A DNA stretch of 64,000 nt, taken from positions 186,001-250,000 of the forward strand of contig JAHDYR010000069.1 of NCBI GenBank assembly GCA_019828565.1, given 5' to 3'. The notes beneath the pieces are model-generated. The model was not told where the DNA came from. It saw only the letters and a program-made list of their open reading frames with translations, and did not search any database. The stretch comes from Carpediemonas membranifera BICM. Lineage: Eukaryota; Protista; Fornicata. A program made the position numbers and the translations under genes. Below, piece after piece: positions 15,979-53,562 of this stretch (positions are counted from its first letter, which is position 1; the number at the start of each line of letters is the position of its first letter).

Positions 15979-16471
15979 TCCTATTACTGTACTCTTATAA
16001 ACCAGCATTTTTTATAGACTGAGAGACGCTTCTTCCGACTTTGCGGTTAGCTGAAATAGTGTCCTCAGTGGAGTGTAAGCGATAAGTGGAAGGCAGGAAG
16101 CACTTTGTCATTTGACGCTGACATGGTATCTTGGATTCGAATACTGCATACGGGCGCTAATGTAGTGTATGCCGTGACCAGGTGCCAGGAGAATCTCAGT
16201 GTGGATGTGGAGACGCGTCTAATGTGGTGATCGCCACGGTGGAAACATGCTGTCTGTTGTGTGGTTGTGCTACAAACGGTGTCGTCTAGCTGTGAAGCGA
16301 TAGTTTTGTGTCTTAAAGTGCGGTGGCCATGGTGGAGACACAGCCGTTGGGGTAGAAGTAGTTCTGCCGTTGAGGTGCTGATTGTAAACATCCGTGTTGA
16401 GTTTGCGATGCTAATCAATTGATTGGGCACTAAACTGCGAATTGACGAGCTGCTCCGAAACACAGCGAAAG

Positions 16472-21211: not shown

Positions 21212-21589
21212 GCTGTGCCGATTCCAAAATTTCGCAGCTTAAGGTATGAAGAAAATTTTTCTCGGTTGTGCCTGAACCATTGAGTATTGCAGCGAGTGAC
21301 GTGCATTGCAACCTGTCAGTGCGCACACGACGACCCTGCTCTTTTCAACCTGATGTCACAGGCCGGCTACAGTGATTCATGCTTTGCCAACGCTCGACCC
21401 AGAAACACAAACGCAGGTACTACCGACCCCTATCGTGTCCGGCGACTCGCTAGGTCTTGCTGCGGTAGAGTTGAGCCGTGTCGTGTCAATTTTGACAATT
21501 TTTCGCTACACTACCAACCTCGGCTCTTTCTCGAAGCCAAGGTCGAAATACTAGAGTTCTTTACGTTACGATATGATCATTGTCTTGAG

Positions 21590-31320: not shown

Positions 31321-33000
31321 TCAATGGTCATGAAAAAGCATCCCAGGTGTCATCGGCTCTCCCCTCGGCGTCCCAAAGACCATGGACGCTCCCGGGGTGA
31401 CTTGTCCTGGCTGGCTCGGCTGACTCCCCAGGCTGGTCTGGGTCGGTCCAGGCGTGCCCATGTCTAGTGCCCGCCGAGTTCCAGTACTCCGTCGACCGGG
31501 GGGTAGCACGCGTCTGACACTCATCGGCCCGCTAAGAGAGGAGGGCATGGGCAGAGGGGCGCGTCGGTTGAGTGGCGGGGAGGAAAAAATGTCTGACAGG
31601 AAGGGGCCGGGGGCGTGGGTCGGGGTGGCTGCGATATGCCGGAAATTGCCGGAGCCAAGTGCACTGCGAATCGCCGGAACGGGTCGGCTCGTGATAAATT
31701 TGTCAGAAGCACAGATTGACTCGACAACTTTGGGGTAAAACCGCCAGTACCGCAGGCGGTTGTCATCGGACAGTGTATAAAATGAGTTTGGCATCGTCGG
31801 ATGTAACGTGACAGTCGATGTCTCCTGCGCGGGTTGGCTGAACAACAAGTGTGGCGCGTCAGCATTACTGGTCCCCAACTCCCATAAACTCGGGTCAGAC
31901 CCGGATCTAGCCCTAGATATGAGATCATCAATGTCCCGCCACATGACAATGGAGCCCGTATGGTGGCCGTGGAGCAGCTCGCCGGCCCGAGTCCAGGTCG
32001 GTCGGATGTGGAAGCTGGCGCTCGATGCCATCTCTGGTGGATCATCGATCGATAGCTTGAGCTTCTCAGGGTCTTTCTTACCGAAGTCCTGGGTTCTAAG
32101 TACATAAACTGCGCGTTTGCAGTCTTTGACTGCGAGTTTCGTATAATCATCCGAGAACTGCATGTGAGTCAATGCGCTCCCCCCGAAATCCACTGTATGC
32201 AGCGGCTTACCTGCGTGCTGCCGCCCCTTCCTCAGGTCCCACAGCGACATGGCCGTCCCTCCAACAGTTAATATAGTATACGTGCTCGCCAGTCTCGCCG
32301 GGCACCAGCGGGCTGAGGCGAGCCTGTCGCCGCCGTGGGGTTTCACTCTTCGGGCAGGGATCTCGGCGGCTATGGCGTGTCTGGCGAACGGGAACGAGGG
32401 CTGGCGGAAGTCGTAGACGTAGACTGCGCCCTTGCTGCTCGCCATGACGATCTCTGGGCTCTCGGGTGAGAACGAGACCGTTTGGACCCCCGTAAGGTCA
32501 CGGGACAGCTCCTTCTCTCCGGGCGGGGTGAGCATGACGTCGGTAGCACTGTTCCGCTTGGCTAGAGCTGCCAGCGACCCGTCAGGCCGCAGACGAAAAG
32601 GAGTAACAGTCGATGTGCTCGAATCAGCAAAGACAATCGTGTCATCGCCACTCCAATCGAGGTCCAAGATCGCTCCAGTGCCTACAATACGGTCAGAGAT
32701 CTCGATGAGCTCGCCGGTCTCCTTGCTTACGACGTTGGCGTCGAAGAGCTTGACCGACCAATCGAACCCGCTGATCGCAAACTTGAACTTGTTTCGGTCG
32801 GTACGGCAGAATTTCATCTGTGTTGGTGGTTGCCGGTCGTTGTCGGACAAGAATGAACGCATGGTTAGGCAATCTACTCGTGCATCAGTTACTTTCCCTA
32901 TTTCACGAAGAAAAGCTGGCCATGACAATCGTTGTCGTGGTGGAATACACTCCATGGGGCATGGAATCCTTCCAACCCCGTGGCATTGCGACCACATCAC
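31321..33000 (-). CDS. CDT2: WD40 protein, CDT2/DTL-like CRL4 substrate receptor
   Basis: AILDLDW, VQTVSFSP, VYVYDFR, SASFHIR and TLSDDNRLRYWR follow CDT2 blade motifs, followed by a Pro/Ser-rich tail. The start codon is uncertain. Confidence 0.65.
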   Translation of the reverse strand: MMWSQCHGVGRIPCPMECIPPRQRLSWPAFLREIGKVTDARVDCLTMRSFLSDNDRQPPTQMKFCRTDRNKFKFAISGFDWSVKLFDANVVSKETGELIEISDRIVGTGAILDLDWSGDDTIVFADSSTSTVTPFRLRPDGSLAALAKRNSATDVMLTPPGEKELSRDLTGVQTVSFSPESPEIVMASSKGAVYVYDFRQPSFPFARHAIAAEIPARRVKPHGGDRLASARWCPARLASTYTILTVGGTAMSLWDLRKGRQHAGKPLHTVDFGGSALTHMQFSDDYTKLAVKDCKRAVYVLRTQDFGKKDPEKLKLSIDDPPEMASSASFHIRPTWTRAGELLHGHHTGSIVMWRDIDDLISRARSGSDPSLWELGTSNADAPHLLFSQPAQETSTVTLHPTMPNSFYTLSDDNRLRYWRFYPKVVESICASDKFITSRPVPAIRSALGSGNFRHIAATPTHAPGPFLSDIFSSPPLNRRAPLPMPSSLSGPMSVRRVLPPGRRSTGTRRALDMGTPGPTQTSLGSQPSQPGQVTPGASMVFGTPRGEPMTPGMLFHDH

Positions 33001-33004
33001 TAAT

Positions 33005-33118
33005 TATTGCGCAGTTTAAGATATGTTAAAATGTGCTTTTGAAGGGTCAAACAATGTGTTTATACTGCGCAACACTGCCATGTCTCCCTCCTACTCACGT
33101 CTTAAGTCGGTAGGGAGA
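33005..33118 (+). ncRNA. Putative second (upstream) omegaRNA-like scaffold, or element left end
   Basis: TTGCGCAGT (33007-33015) pairs with ACTGCGCAA (33064-33072) and the stem extends inward. A second hairpin TCTCCC..CTAC/GTAGGGAGA spans 33083-33118. Homologous to the unit after the Fanzor stop. Confidence 0.45.
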
Positions 33119-33277
33119 TCGTCTTCTCCAGGGCTTCCACAAAGCGTCTTCTTCGTGGACGTCAGCACAGCTGCAAAGATCGCTCGCTCACACGTCGTCT
33201 CATTGTCTTCTATTCCACATTAAATTCACTTCTACACTTGTATAGGCTGGTAATGGTGTTCATCGTCGGCTCTATAT

Positions 33278-34574
33278 GTGTGCGTCTGGGCAACTGCAGA
33301 CGGAGTGGAGACGTTGAGTGGCCTCATCAGCCACTTCAACGGGGAGTACTCGATGTCGCTCCGCCAGCCTCGCCTCGTGCCGATCGTGCCCATGGCCCCC
33401 GTCCGACCGGGCTTCATGGCCTACGGTGACACGATGGGCCTACTGAACGAGAACTTCTGTCATCGTGTGGGAATTAATCCCACACTCCCACACGCCACCA
33501 AACCGTTGACAGAAGAGCAGGAGGAACCATACCAGAACAACCCCAGGTCAATGGGCCGTCTGCTCAGCCTGAGCACCGATGGGGTCTGTGTGGCGGTGAC
33601 GATTAAGAGAGGCTTCGGCCACTATCGGCCACAACATGATGCGAGCATGCCTGTTCGAAAGCGAGCGAAATGGCGGGAGAAAGAGCGCCCCCGACTCGGG
33701 ACCAATAATGCCGAGGCTCCGCCCGCGCCGGATCCTGATGCCCACCTCATGGGGTTCGACCCGGGCGCGAGGTCCATCGGAGGGTATTACATCAGGCACC
33801 CCGATGGCACCACCAGCTCCGGCGTCCTTCCAAAGTGCGGATACACTAAGACGCCAAGTTTCGGCTTTGATATGACGGCCGCGTCGTTCAAGAGCACAAG
33901 ACTAGTGAGTATCAACAACTCTATTAGACAACTCTATTTGTGCTGGACAACGCGAACGACATTTTCGAGGCTGGAATGCGTAAGTCTTTCCGCCGAGTGC
34001 GCTTTGCGAACCACATCCTTCGCCAGAAGCACTTCGCCCGCTGCGGCCAACAGTTGGCTCGGGAGTTCGGTTGGCGTGGCCACCATCCCATCGCCACCCC
34101 CATTCGCCTGAAAGTCTTCTACGGGAGCTCGGGATTCACCACGCCTGCTGGTATGTTCATTCCTTGCGCGCCATATCGAAAGTTCGCGAGAGAGATAGTA
34201 CCCCTTCTCAAGGGTATAACATTGTCGTCGATCTTAACATGGTAGACGAGGATCGCACCACCGTCGTCTGCCCTCACAGCCACGCCCCCTACAAGCGAGT
34301 TCGTCCGCGTGATGACCAGCACGTTCACCCACATCGTGTGATGCTCTGCGAAAATCCACAGTGCCGTGGTGCTCAGTGGCGCGCAACAGTTCCTGATGCT
34401 CTGAATGTTGATCATCGGGACAAGAGTGCTGCAGAGAACATCCTGTGGCGTTCTCTTGCCACGGAAGATGAGCTCAGTGGCTCTCCGTTCAGTCGCACAT
34501 CGATCCCACGTCTTCAAACTTCATTCCAGTATCATCAATTGGCTAACCGCCAACATTCGTCTACGGACGGATGA
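33278..34574 (+). pseudogene. Fanzor1-type (TnpB-like) RuvC endonuclease, two frameshifts, apparently 5'-truncated
   Basis: Frame 2 has LSTDGVCVAV and MGFDPGAR (RuvC-I D at 33758). Frame 1 has RRVRFANHILRQKH and VFYGSSGF..P.APYRKF. Frame 3 has VDEDRTTVVCPH (RuvC-II E at 34248), LCENPQC and HRDKSAAENIL (RuvC-III D at 34419). Confidence 0.85.
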
Positions 34575-34710
34575 TGTTGTGCAGTTTGGAACTTTGATCG
34601 TTCCTTTCAGGCCCTGTCTGGGAGGTTCGAAAAAGTTTATACTGCGCAACATAAAAACCTGGGCAATACGGCCATGTATCCCGTCCTCTCTTCTCAAGTC
34701 GGCTGGGTGT
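34574..34710 (+). ncRNA. Putative Fanzor omegaRNA scaffold
   Basis: Begins at the ORF stop. 79-nt hairpin: ATGTTGTGCAGT (34574-85) pairs with ACTGCGCAACAT (34641-52), AACTTT with AAAGTT, and CCTTTCAG (34603-10) with CTGGGAGG (34618-25). A weaker second hairpin spans about 34678-34709. Confidence 0.6.
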
Positions 34711-35459
34711 CTGCTAGACTCAAAAGTAGAATCTACCAACATCGGCAAGATGGCTCAGGGCCAGACCCATGTCGGTATCCCCCCCAGCCCGAAGCTCTGG
34801 ATCCTGTGGTAAACGGCCTGTATGCTGAGTACGATGGTTAGCGAGTGAGTGGTGCTGGTGTGGGATGGCACGCGTTGAGGCTGTTGTTGTTGGATGGCAT
34901 TGGGCAATGAAGAAGGCGACAGTATGCCCAGTTTGGCAGGGCAGATGCTGTCAGATAATCAGCTATTGCGGGAATTGCACGCGTTCACATGGCACTACTG
35001 CGGCTACCAAATGAGTGCAAAAGTGCAGAATAAGGGCACACCATCGATTTTGCAGCGATAGAAGCCCCAAGGCATGAGCGAGAACTTTACATTTGAAATT
35101 CGAATGACTCCAGATGAGTATGAGCAGATGATGCGCATTTTGAATCGCACTAACCCCGAATATGCCGAGAACACCTCGAACGCCGACGACGGGAGGTATT
35201 TGAAGCGCGGAAGTGGAACTCTTAGCCACAGCAGGAATCAATCGAGTCATCAGGACGAGCTTAGCCCTTATCTGAACTCCAGCGTCCCTTACCAAGGCTC
35301 TCCGTCGAGCTTTTCTCGTTAGACACGGCTCACACCACAAAGCCCAAGATCAGCAGCAAGCACGGTCTTTTGACCCACTTTTCTGTACAACAATTCCTTT
35401 ATATTCGCTAAACAGCTTCCTCCTCTGTCCTTGTGTGAGGTTGTTGAGATCTTTTCCTC

Positions 35460-35867
35460 GTCTGGGCGATTTATAAGGCGCAGCTGTCGGCCACGCGCAA
35501 GACTTTTCTTATTGTGAGAAAAGGTCTTTTCCTGCTGTCGAAGATGGTCCTGTTCGACTTCGCCTTGCTGCTGCGTCTCTTCGCCTTCTCGTACAGGCCG
35601 GTCACTGGCAAGCATATGTGGGATCTAGTGTATCCCGCGATCTTTTACACAATCCCAGACACGATGACGATCATTGGTCTCCTCATCAACTTCAAGGACG
35701 CCCCCGGCAAGAGCAGGCGCGGCCGGCCGCCTAAGGCCAGACCGGTCGAGCGCGAGTGGGATAGGAGTCGGCCTCATCGCTCGCCAGCACAGCTGCATGG
35801 CATCGCGGAGGCTGCGTATCCCGAGAGCGAGCTTGAGCTTGACCTCGAACCAGGGCTCTCGGACTGA
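35460..35867 (+). pseudogene. Duplicated 3' fragment of the multi-pass membrane protein gene at 42417-43523
   Basis: Identical C-terminal translation (..RKGLFLLSKM..LEPGLSD); the 5' two thirds are absent. Confidence 0.9.
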
Positions 35868-35995
35868 GCGGTAAAGTAGGGCTGTAGATGCTGGCCATGG
35901 TTTCGCTTCATCTGGTTTGGAGGACGATACATGGCCCGGCATAAACTGTAAATCACGAGCTTGGACAAACAGAACAGAATTTCCCAAAAATCACG

Positions 35996-37267
35996 ATGAC
36001 GAAACAGAAGATCTCCGTTTCGGTGCGCTTTAGACCGCTGCTTCCCACCGAAGCGAAGCATAAGACGGTTGAAGGCGTTCCCGATTCGGAAGATCGCCCA
36101 GCGGACAGCTTCTCGCTCTCCACCGGCAAGAAGCTCTCCGTTGGCCCCTTCGAGAGGGTCTTTACCAGACACGATCGGAACGGCGCCGTGTACCGCGAGA
36201 TCGTGCAGCCCCTTGTCTCTGGCGTCCTCAACCTGCAGATCTCCACCGCAGCCTTCTTCGCCTACGGCCAGACGTCCGCGGGCAAGACGCACACGATGCT
36301 CGGCTACGGCCCAGAGCGCGGCATGTACGATTTTGCAGCCCAAGACGTTCTCACGTTCATTGAGCCGCACCCAGACCTCAGCCTTCAGATCCGGTTCATT
36401 GAACTGTACAACGGAAAGGCCTTCGACCTCAACAACAACCACATGGAGTGCTTCGTTCGGACGAACGCGGAGGGCGAGATCGACATTCGCGCCAACACCG
36501 AAGTTGACCCCGAAACCAAGCAGGTCAAGGTCAATCGACTCAAGACAGTCACCGCGAGGACGATGGAGGACGTGCATGCCATCATGAGGAACGGCATCAA
36601 GCAGCGCGCCGTGGGCTGCTCCACGAGACACAACCAATCGTCCAGATCCCACGCAGTCTTGGAACTTGAGATTGTATCCCAAGATCTGATCGCTCTCCGC
36701 GACGAAATCACGCAGAAGGAAGCCGAGCTCGTCCCGGTGGGCAACAAACGCGACTCGTACGTCATCGACAACGCCTCCAAGCTCTATCGCCAGGACGAGA
36801 TCGGCCGCTGGATCAAGAACGACGACCCTGAGATGGACGCGATCATGGCCGCCAACGACGCCGAGGTGGCCCACTTCCAGGCCCGCGTGGACGCAGCAGT
36901 GGCCGCTGAGAAGGGGTACATGGCGTCCCACGGGCAGGGTCTGCTCGGCCGGCGCATCATCCTCGTGGACCTCGCGGGGGCTGACACGGAGCTGAGGACG
37001 GGCAAGATGGACCCCGCCGAGCAGAAGGAGAGCCGCGAGATCAACAAGTCGCTGCTTGCGCTGAAGGAGTGCTTCAGGGCACTCGCCTCGGGCGCCTCAC
37101 ACGTGCCTTACCGCAACTCCATGTTGACCCACACGCTGAAGCGGTTCCTGGGCGATGACCGCGTCAGGGTGGGCATGCTGGCCAACGCGTCGCCCAGCGC
37201 TGAGCATGCGGCGATGACGGTGAACACCATGCGGTATGCCAACCTCGTGGCGACTTCAGTCAAGTAG
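35996..37267 (+). CDS. Kinesin motor protein (motor-only, kinesin-13-like, large loop insertion)
   Basis: VSVRFRP, FAYGQTSAGKTHTM, FIELYN, NQSSRSHA, LVDLAG, EINKSLLALKEC and HVPYRNS.LT. Confidence 0.93.
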   Translation: MTKQKISVSVRFRPLLPTEAKHKTVEGVPDSEDRPADSFSLSTGKKLSVGPFERVFTRHDRNGAVYREIVQPLVSGVLNLQISTAAFFAYGQTSAGKTHTMLGYGPERGMYDFAAQDVLTFIEPHPDLSLQIRFIELYNGKAFDLNNNHMECFVRTNAEGEIDIRANTEVDPETKQVKVNRLKTVTARTMEDVHAIMRNGIKQRAVGCSTRHNQSSRSHAVLELEIVSQDLIALRDEITQKEAELVPVGNKRDSYVIDNASKLYRQDEIGRWIKNDDPEMDAIMAANDAEVAHFQARVDAAVAAEKGYMASHGQGLLGRRIILVDLAGADTELRTGKMDPAEQKESREINKSLLALKECFRALASGASHVPYRNSMLTHTLKRFLGDDRVRVGMLANASPSAEHAAMTVNTMRYANLVATSVK

Positions 37268-37428
37268 TGCAGTTTAAAGTGCAGCAGTTTGCTTCAACAG
37301 ATCCTAATTGATCAAGATTCGATCAAATCGATCATAAAGATGTCCAACCACAACTTCCTAACGAAAGACTCGCGAAGACCAAGACACCCATGAGGCACAC
37401 GTAGCCTATTATTCTCTACTCCCGCGTC

Positions 37429-40999: not shown

Positions 41000-42824
41000 G
41001 CTGCACTTTAAACTGCACTACTTGACTGAAGTCGCCACGAGGTTGGCATACCGCATGGTGTTCACCGTCATCGCCGCATGCTCAGCGCTGGGCGACGCGT
41101 TGGCCAGCATGCCCACCCTGACGCGGTCATCGCCCAGGAACCGCTTCAGCGTGTGGGTCAACATGGAGTTGCGGTAAGGCACGTGTGAGGCGCCCGAGGC
41201 GAGTGCCCTGAAGCACTCCTTCAGCGCAAGCAGCGACTTGTTGATCTCGCGGCTCTCCTTCTGCTCGGCGGGGTCCATCTTGCCCGTCCTCAGCTCCGTG
41301 TCAGCCCCCGCGAGGTCCACGAGGATGATGCGCCGGCCGAGCAGACCCTGCCCGTGGGACGCCATGTACCCCTTCTCAGCGGCCACTGCTGCGTCCACGC
41401 GGGCCTGGAAGTGGGCCACCTCGGCGTCGTTGGCGGCCATGATCGCGTCCATCTCAGGGTCGTCGTTCTTGATCCAGCGGCCGATCTCGTCCTGGCGATA
41501 GAGCTTGGAGGCGTTGTCGATGACGTACGAGTCGCGTTTGTTGCCCACCGGGACGAGCTCGGCTTCCTTCTGCGTGATTTCGTCGCGGAGAGCGATCAGA
41601 TCTTGGGATACAATCTCAAGTTCCAAGACTGCGTGGGATCTGGACGATTGGTTGTGTCTAGTGGAGCAGCCCACGGCGCGCTGCTTGATGCCGTTCCTCA
41701 TGATGGCATGCACGTCCTCCATCGTCCTCGCGGTGACTGTCTTGAGTCGATTGACCTTGACCTGCTTGGTTTCGGGTCAACTTCGGTGTTGGCGCGAATG
41801 TCGATCTCGCCCTCCGCGTTCGTCCGAACGAAGCACTCCATGTGGTTGTTGTTGAGGTCGAAGGCCTTTCCGTTGTACAGTTCAATGAACCGGATCTGAA
41901 GGCTGAGGTCTGGGTGCGGCTCAATGAACGTGAGAACGTCTTGGGCTGCAAAATCGTACATGCCGCGCTCTGGGCCGTAGCCGAGCATCGTGTGCGTCTT
42001 GCCCGCGGACGTCTGGCCGTAGGCGAAGAAGGCTGCGGTGGAGATCTGCAGGTTGAGGACGCCAGAGACAAGGGGCTGCACGATCTCGCGGTACACGGCG
42101 CCGTTCCGATCGTGTCTGGTAAAGACCCTCTCGAAGGGGCCAACGGAGAGCTTCTTGCCGGTGGAGAGCGAGAAGCTGTCCGCTGGGCGATCTTCCGAAT
42201 CGGGAACGCCTTCAACCGTCTTATGCTTCGCTTCGGTGGGAAGCAGCGGTCTAAAGCGCACCGAAACGGAGATCTTCTGCTTCGTCATCGTGATTTTTGG
42301 GAAATTCTGTTCTGTTTGTCCAAGCTCGTGATTTACAGTTTATGCCGGGCCATGTATCGTCCTCCAAACCAGATGAAGCGAAACCATGGCCAGCATCTAC
42401 AGCCCTACTCTACCGCTCAGTCCGAGAGCCCTGGTTCGAGGTCAAGCTCAAGCTCGCTCTCGGGATACGCAGCCTCCGCGATGCCATGCAGCTGTGCTGG
42501 CGAGCGATGAGGCCGACTCCTATCCCACTCGCGCTCGACCGGTCTGGCCTTAGGCGGCCGGCCGCGCCTGCTCTTGCCGGGGGCGTCCTTGAAGTTGATG
42601 AGGAGACCAATGATCGTCATCGTGTCTGGGATTGTGTAAAAGATCGCGGGATACACTAGATCCCACATATGCTTGCCAGTGACCGGCCTGTACGAGAAGG
42701 CGAAGAGACGCAGCAGCAAGGCGAAGTCGAACAGGACCATCTTCGACAGCAGGAAAAGACCTTTTCTCACAATAAGAAAAGTCTTGCGCGTGGCCGACAG
42801 CTGCGCCTTATAAATCGCCCAGAC
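41000..42824 (-). repeat. Inverted segmental duplication, copy B (1825 nt)
   Basis: Near-identical reverse complement of 35460-37285. Confidence 0.97.
41018..42288 (-). pseudogene. Kinesin copy with a 1-nt frameshift (or a homopolymer sequencing error)
   Basis: GACCCCGAA in copy A is GACCCGAA here (41774-41776), splitting the gene into ORFs 41698-42288 and 41018-41722. Confidence 0.7.
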
Positions 42825-53166: not shown

Positions 53167-53562
53167 TGAGTTATGAGAATGTGCTGCGCAGGATTAGAAT
53201 TGTTGAGTCTAAACCTCATGTCCGCTACCCTTCTGGTGTACGACAGGTGGGCCGTCAGACTGAACCTGTTCAGTCCTCTGGAGTTCATCCCGGGGGGTCG
53301 ACAGCCTAAGTCACCTTTACATGAATCCTCCACATAAACCCTCTAAATACCACAGAGAGCGTACTGTTAAAATGCACCGTATCATGCTGAAGTCTGCTAT
53401 AGATGATTGAGAGTTACTTTACTGCTTGCACTGTGCACTCTATGATACTTCACATGCCCACACTCAGCTCCGCTTGTATCCCGCTGCAACCCCTCCCCCA
53501 CAGACATCATCACCGATCGCTCTCACCAGTTCCCTAGTATGCTCCATTTACAGCCCCAACGG

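Follow-up and report, generated by a model that had tools for sequence, protein, structure and literature searches.

Non-autonomous LTR retroelements of the TRIM and LARD type and the Ty3/gypsy chromoviruses form one class of mobile DNA with which the locus described here can be compared; the TnpB/Cas12k CAST systems, taken by their textbook features, form another, and the catalytic triad of CAST effectors is not intact. Fanzor1 nucleases such as SpuFz1 and GtFz1 (PMC3627910, PMC10432273, PMC10711439) are carried, in all described cases, by DNA transposons (PMC3627910, PMC13565253), and a 2026 review found no evidence of retrotransposons encoding Fanzor (PMC13565253). In fission yeast, insertion of the retrotransposon Tf1 near promoters is guided by Sap1, and a Sap1 site is also present in the LTR (PMC7175516). 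For the comparison with CAST, see 10.1101/2025.08.27.672191.

The locus lies in a 64,000-nucleotide stretch of Carpediemonas membranifera DNA (the window). A DNA search against the organism's own genome showed window positions 33032-34651 to be a single copy of an element present many times: 40 long matches had identities of 92-100%, and the terminal 24-mer occurs 236 times. Full-length sister copies are about 2.28 kb long, and each has one Fanzor ORF. The original prediction had described the window copy as 5'-truncated. In fact it keeps both element ends, 33032 and 34651, and a 5-bp duplication, TAAAA; what it lacks, compared with full-length copies, is an internal 667 bp after 33279, and the TAA at 33251 that had been read as a sign of truncation is out of the frame used there by full-length copies. 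The window copy is dead. The main point, which that prediction missed, is the carrier element: we consider it likely that the dead Fanzor gene, probably a Fanzor1, is the antisense cargo of a non-autonomous LTR-retroelement shell. The argument draws on the following features.

33011-33021, plus strand: host target motif, consensus GCAGKWTAAGG; the distance from the start of its GCA to the element is exactly 21 bp.
33027-33031, plus strand: left copy of the 5-bp target-site duplication TAAAA.
33032-33074, minus strand: 43-bp terminal unit TGT...ACA, resembling a miniature 3' LTR with its own U3-like start and a U5-like end.
33075-33094, minus strand: purine-rich, polypurine-tract-like stretch directly before the 43-bp unit (16/20 purines, 17/20 in most copies), ending AG|TGT.
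33279-33280, plus strand: junction of the 667-bp deletion, by which the Fanzor ORF has lost its N-terminal third; the deletion is common to a mobile 1.6-kb subfamily.
33281-34574, plus strand: remnant Fanzor coding region in three frames, with RuvC D at 33758, E at 34248 and D at 34419, and a C-to-S change in the first pair of the zinc finger.
33928-33935, plus strand: local 8-bp duplication, the first frameshift.
34210-34214, plus strand: 1-bp loss within a G run, the second frameshift, possibly an assembly error.
34539-34651, plus strand: predicted omegaRNA scaffold of two short hairpins and one long; the closing stem pairs 34575-34585 with 34641-34651 and ends on the element's last base.
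34635-34651, minus strand: right terminal repeat; its 17 bp recur without mismatch in the inner portion of the left unit, and they form the U3-like beginning of the retro strand.
34652-34671, plus strand: right duplication TAAAA and flank, the expected guide position, which differs in every insertion.
53180-53354, minus strand: solo terminal unit of 175 bp belonging to Fanzor family C; it is flanked by a SNAP gene and a WD40 gene, the motif precedes it by 21 bp, and its duplication matches at 4/5 positions.

The three plus-strand frames that had been joined into one protein, and every motif named in them, the catalytic residues included, are present in the window copy, and the stop codon of the remnant ORF is at 34572-34574. 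The frames are decay lesions of one dead copy, located against the majority reading of the copies. The 8-bp duplication is unique to the window copy among aligned copies; the loss in the G run (at about 34211) has one counterpart, in copy L012, and could be an assembly error, the assembly having been made from MinION R9.4 and Illumina reads. Four other copies (L002, L005, L007 and L008) read 420-435 codons unbroken across this region. Programmed frameshifting and tiny introns were considered and rejected because the breaks vary between copies and the deletion ends are not GT-AG. As predicted, the first CxxC reads CPHSH, a C-to-S change found in 2/28 copies of a family that otherwise reads CPHCH. 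VDEDRT is likewise present in the window copy, although most copies have VNEDRT. The suggestion that annotation had missed the gene holds only in part: NCBI has pieces of it as hypothetical proteins, and some are named "Transposase" in UniRef. In public records two members of the Fanzor families, P0014 and P0035, bear the wrong names "cytosine deaminase" and "Chromosome partition protein Smc". Contigs from public runs span the element and the WD40 gene beside it, with gaps at 32972-33032 and 34700-35035; this pattern fits RNA, the run type being a guess and the depth not rankable.

On its sequence, the protein is well supported as a Fanzor of the TnpB family, and here the original prediction was right. 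The genome holds three Fanzor families, 45-58% identical to one another. Family A, that of the window copy, has about 80 matches at 85% identity or more, a lower bound in which some matches are two pieces of one copy, and the other two have about 50 matches at 53-63%, again a lower bound. DPG, a shifted Glu, a C4 finger and RD are kept across all three, as in Fanzor1. The RuvC-I DPG is invariant in 11 aligned proteins from the three families, with its Asp in 27/27 copies. The catalytic Glu lies 160 aa after that Asp and is separated by six residues from the first zinc-finger Cys (E-DRTTVV-C); our criterion for a Fanzor was a Glu 120-160 aa after DPG and six residues before the finger. Finger and RD follow the family pattern CPxC...CxNPxC...HRD, of which the window copy has lost one Cys; the second Cys pair, CxxxxC, differs from that of Fanzor1, and the family-A finger spacing exceeds the published pattern. 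The conserved motif set matches the Fanzor fingerprint of Yoon et al. (PMC10711439) and likewise the Bao-Jurka motif (PMC3627910).

Protein searches used the window pieces and the natural open frames of sister copies as queries. Sequence searches of 1.84 billion representatives, and of metagenome and viral contigs, found homologues in no other species, which sets these proteins apart from SpuFz1 and GtFz1. By ESM Atlas language-model features, the protein scored 0.97-0.98 against PF07282/PF26935 clusters whose members, 625-707 aa long, come from giant viruses and algae. Pfam returned PF07282 alone, below threshold, for the longer copies and no match for the window's three ORF pieces, and a PDB sequence search gave weak matches. 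AlphaFold models from two runs were of low confidence (pLDDT 36-38); the top three Foldseek matches to them were SpuFz1, at a non-significant E of 0.06-0.15. Membership of Fanzor1 is likely, judging by size and carrier: it is favoured by protein length, by the lack of an IS607 recombinase and by the length of the nearest clusters. An ORF of 636-663 aa, depending on the start, in a multicopy element of about 2.3 kb is also what Fanzor1 elements have. None of the full-length family-A copies examined has a wholly intact ORF; the sole breaks in L012 and L020 are changes of one base within homopolymers, possibly introduced by the assembly.

The right end of the element encodes a predicted omegaRNA-like structure. 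On the Fanzor strand the predicted folding of the final 110-130 nt is much more stable than that of shuffled sequences (z -7.3, against -3.3 antisense, in the window copy), and z values for this strand-biased fold range from -5 to -7. Because the final stem closes on the element's last base, the guide would consist of the duplication and the right flank, in keeping with the structured right-end RNA and variable flank of Fanzor1. No compensatory changes were found among the copies, which are too similar for covariation, and one common variant disrupts a pair of the closing stem. Across 23 empty sites that were rebuilt, positions -10 to -1, next to the guide, show no conservation; the conserved positions are at -21 to -11. 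The usual adjacent TAM is therefore missing, in contrast to Fanzor1, and the variable 5-bp duplication is another difference. Both suggest that the rules of targeting are unusual or relaxed, which is of interest for tool building.

These data bear on whether the Fanzor does anything for its element. It might be a passive passenger, captured once by the retro shell, functionless now and hitch-hiking. Most copies are broken, no TAM was found, singleton changes among copies are neutral, and the 2026 review holds that an element that does not excise gains nothing from a Fanzor (PMC13565253), all of which would fit. Conversely, the catalytic residues are nearly unchanged among 29 copies, shared variants show a mild synonymous excess (34/94, against 26% expected), and the predicted scaffold has the element's present end built into it exactly. 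The triad and zinc finger are also kept in families that are only 45-58% identical, which needs long purifying selection. We regard a passive passenger as rather unlikely. This reading concerns function, and can be combined with the retro shell.

The shortened form of the element has itself been mobile. The 667-bp deletion is common to at least five other insertions with differing flanks, implying that copies of this form moved although they had no complete Fanzor gene in cis; deletion derivatives without the Fanzor N-terminus have thus spread to new sites. An exact 5-bp duplication is found in 18 of 29 copies, and besides these in L010 and L013, which have extended left ends. Six others (L005, L015, L016, L023, L025 and L029) have both ends and unmatched duplications, and may be products of inter-copy recombination or assembly chimeras. 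The right flank of the window copy, 34652-34707, is about 75-80% similar to the element's own first 60 bases (repeats D4 and D5), perhaps a trace of an older, decayed copy at the same site.

What, then, is the carrier? Its ends are TGT...ACA, bordered by 5-bp duplications, and it has no terminal inverted repeats beyond 3-5 bp, TGT/ACA alone being inverted; the absence of such repeats is a further difference from Fanzor1 elements. The 43-bp unit also occurs solo, with 5-bp duplications of its own, and its outer 14 bases also end an autonomous LTR family (13/14 match in the window copy). In families A and C the terminal unit adjoins a purine tract, less pure than those of the resident gypsies, whose LTRs are TGT...ACA following purine tracts that end in AG. 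The left unit ranges in length from 34 to 175 bp, family C having the same plan with a 175-bp terminal unit. TG...CA ends, a 5-bp duplication, a purine tract, solo units and a terminus in common with an autonomous family are all features of TRIM/LARD elements and chromoviruses.

The locus also departs from that class in several respects. The cargo is an antisense nuclease gene, and the repeats are identical only in part, the U5-like portion being at one end. In place of two identical LTRs there are terminal repeats that are alike over 17 bp in the window copy and 24-32 bp in others. At positions 18-23, inherited variants are confined to one of the two sides; L011 is the single copy with the same change in both repeats. 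Non-identical repeats with one-sided variants do not fit canonical LTR copying. By eye, no tRNA-type TGG primer-site start follows the 5' repeat; directly after the repeat, on the minus strand, is the 8-bp palindrome GTTCGAAC. One family-A derivative (L049:2158-2552) holds the 3' coding end and UTR of the host Vps4 gene in retro-sense. The source of this piece has no intron, and the capture fits an RNA origin, without proving one. A second stretch 100% identical to the captured piece lies at C7:287832-288226.

The family sharing the outer terminus was mapped by the coordinates of pattern matches, its match to family A being read over 14 bp. The left 14-mer forms ten same-strand pairs 4551-4555 bp apart, and within 6/10 of these lies an LTR-type RNase H (PF17917), on the other strand and at a distance of 1810 bp from the outer end. 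This position would leave downstream room for an integrase, as in the gypsy order. No purine tract precedes the 14-mer in this helper family, so that the 14-mer is the helper's U5 end, and the U3-like 10-mer of family A is absent from the helper repeats. An autonomous LTR family of 4.6 kb, with copies at, for example, C1:1513863-1518510 and C3:174120-178770, is thus the partner that shares a 14-bp U5 terminus with the element. With the shared 14-mer as the U5 end, the retro direction is fixed, and the Fanzor gene is antisense to it.

As all described carriers of Fanzor1 are DNA transposons, the obvious alternative is a non-autonomous cut-and-paste transposon, mobilized by an undetected DDE transposase or by a retro-integrase acting on excised DNA, with the solo units and deletions arising from abortive gap repair and single-strand annealing. 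The unequal ends would suit such an element, as would the deletion junctions, which mostly show 0-1 bp of microhomology or filler. Against it, inverted repeats are confined to 3-5 bp, the left end matches U5 of the LTR family with RNase H, the purine tract adjoins the terminal unit in two divergent families, and the length of the left unit is free. The genome search proposed with the original prediction did recover paralogues, many copies in three families, but neither a wholly intact family-A ORF nor an end-matched transposase: none was found with the element's ends among the end matches inspected, about half of them, and the one long end pair examined (L031) has no transposase-like ORF. We accordingly judge a DNA transposon unlikely. 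L031 had been a candidate autonomous element and was rejected, being really two left-end fragments flanking host-like DNA.

Insertion sites are marked by a host motif. At 23/23 clean sites, meaning those with an intact duplication, the left end is preceded by GCA at a distance of exactly 21 bp. Genome-wide, the left-end sequence has 152 exact matches, about two dozen or more of them helper LTRs, and the same spacing is found at 83 of the 152. The motif is 6- to 14-fold more frequent than reversed controls across the genome, and in the window it is near 7 of 25 long-ORF starts, against 4.5% expected (p 9e-5). In Carpediemonas it may serve as a core promoter or as a general regulatory site. Further motifs resembling GCAGKWTAAGG are found at window positions 16428-16440, 21232-21244 and 35023-35035. 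Among helper 3' ends the motif was seen at -21 just once (C65), and in the L053 gypsy family the count is 0/7. Families A and C carry the same motif at their own U3-like start, which makes a host factor bridging end and target the preferred explanation; this could account for targeting by A and C, but mostly not by the helper. The arrangement recalls Tf1 and Sap1 in that insertion occurs by a host factor's site near promoters and the site is also in the LTR. It differs in its strict, one-sided 21-bp spacing, in being found in the non-autonomous Fanzor carriers more than in the helper, and in that the factor here is a candidate.

Could the Fanzor itself choose the site, in the manner of CAST, its complex binding the GCA...TAAG motif and recruiting the integrase or cutting the site open? 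Families A and C share the spacing, and the helper and the L053 gypsies mostly do not. Counted from the G of GCA, moreover, the staggered cut falls after bases 16 and 21, and SpuFz1 cuts after 16-17 and 20-21 (PMC10432273). The motif is nevertheless a common host element, with a spaced, protein-like pattern, enriched across the genome and placed at ORF starts. TG...CA ends, a 5-bp duplication, a fixed distance from a motif and a TnpB-family protein aboard are likenesses to CAST, but they go no further than resemblance: the triad of the nuclease site is intact, unlike that of CAST effectors, the partner is a retro-integrase, and the 3' end of the predicted omegaRNA showed no matching fixed guide. 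An integrase cut is also suggested by the precise TG...CA joints and their 5-bp duplications. We hold Fanzor-directed insertion to be very improbable; if true, it would be a eukaryotic, retroelement-based counterpart of CAST.

Returning to an antisense Fanzor in a non-autonomous retro shell, we propose the following course of events. Minus-strand RNA starting from the right repeat would be copied and integrated in trans by the reverse transcriptase and integrase of the 4.6-kb family. The first stretch of DNA may be borrowed from co-packaged helper RNA, leaving the element's own U3-like sequence at both ends and helper U5 at one; such borrowing would account both for the asymmetry of the ends and for a family-C remnant that begins with a helper-type end. 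A host DNA-binding factor at the motif would steer insertion, as Sap1 does for Tf1. Plus-strand RNA would supply the Fanzor mRNA and the omegaRNA, with duplication and right flank as guide, and an intact protein would cut the element-free allele, leading to copying by homologous recombination. Homing is the most likely job of an intact copy, and it is the weakest step in the proposal, because no TAM was found. Non-homologous end joining is absent in metamonads (PMC8516963), and in a host without classical end joining repair of a cut allele would favour copying by homologous recombination.

No paper linking Fanzor with Carpediemonas was found in the literature searched, and these proteins extend Fanzor diversity to Metamonada. 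Three old Fanzor families, two of them riding LTR-type shells, would contradict the review, which saw no evidence of a Fanzor encoded by a retrotransposon. They also make it testable whether restoring excised copies is the sole job of such nucleases.

Some further observations concern the resident retroelements and the neighbourhood of the locus. The L053 gypsy family was considered as the helper and rejected, having a different LTR and no target motif. L059 has a gypsy integrase followed by a tail that is chromodomain-like by eye, and a ~96-bp LTR with the host motif reversed. Left ends of families A and C are found head-to-head with helper U5 ends, 4-7 bp away, at C11:577549/577555, C15:129046/129053, C13:393623/393631, C26:899082/899087 and C3:178766/178774. 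This suggests insertion beside existing LTR ends, for which the motif is no explanation. Family-C left ends occur in tandem at C8:930999, 933080 and 935159, with a period of 2080 bp. Finally, within the window, an inverted duplication of 1826 bp spans a kinesin gene (35460-37285 against 41000-42824, 99.8% identity), either a recent duplication or an assembly effect.
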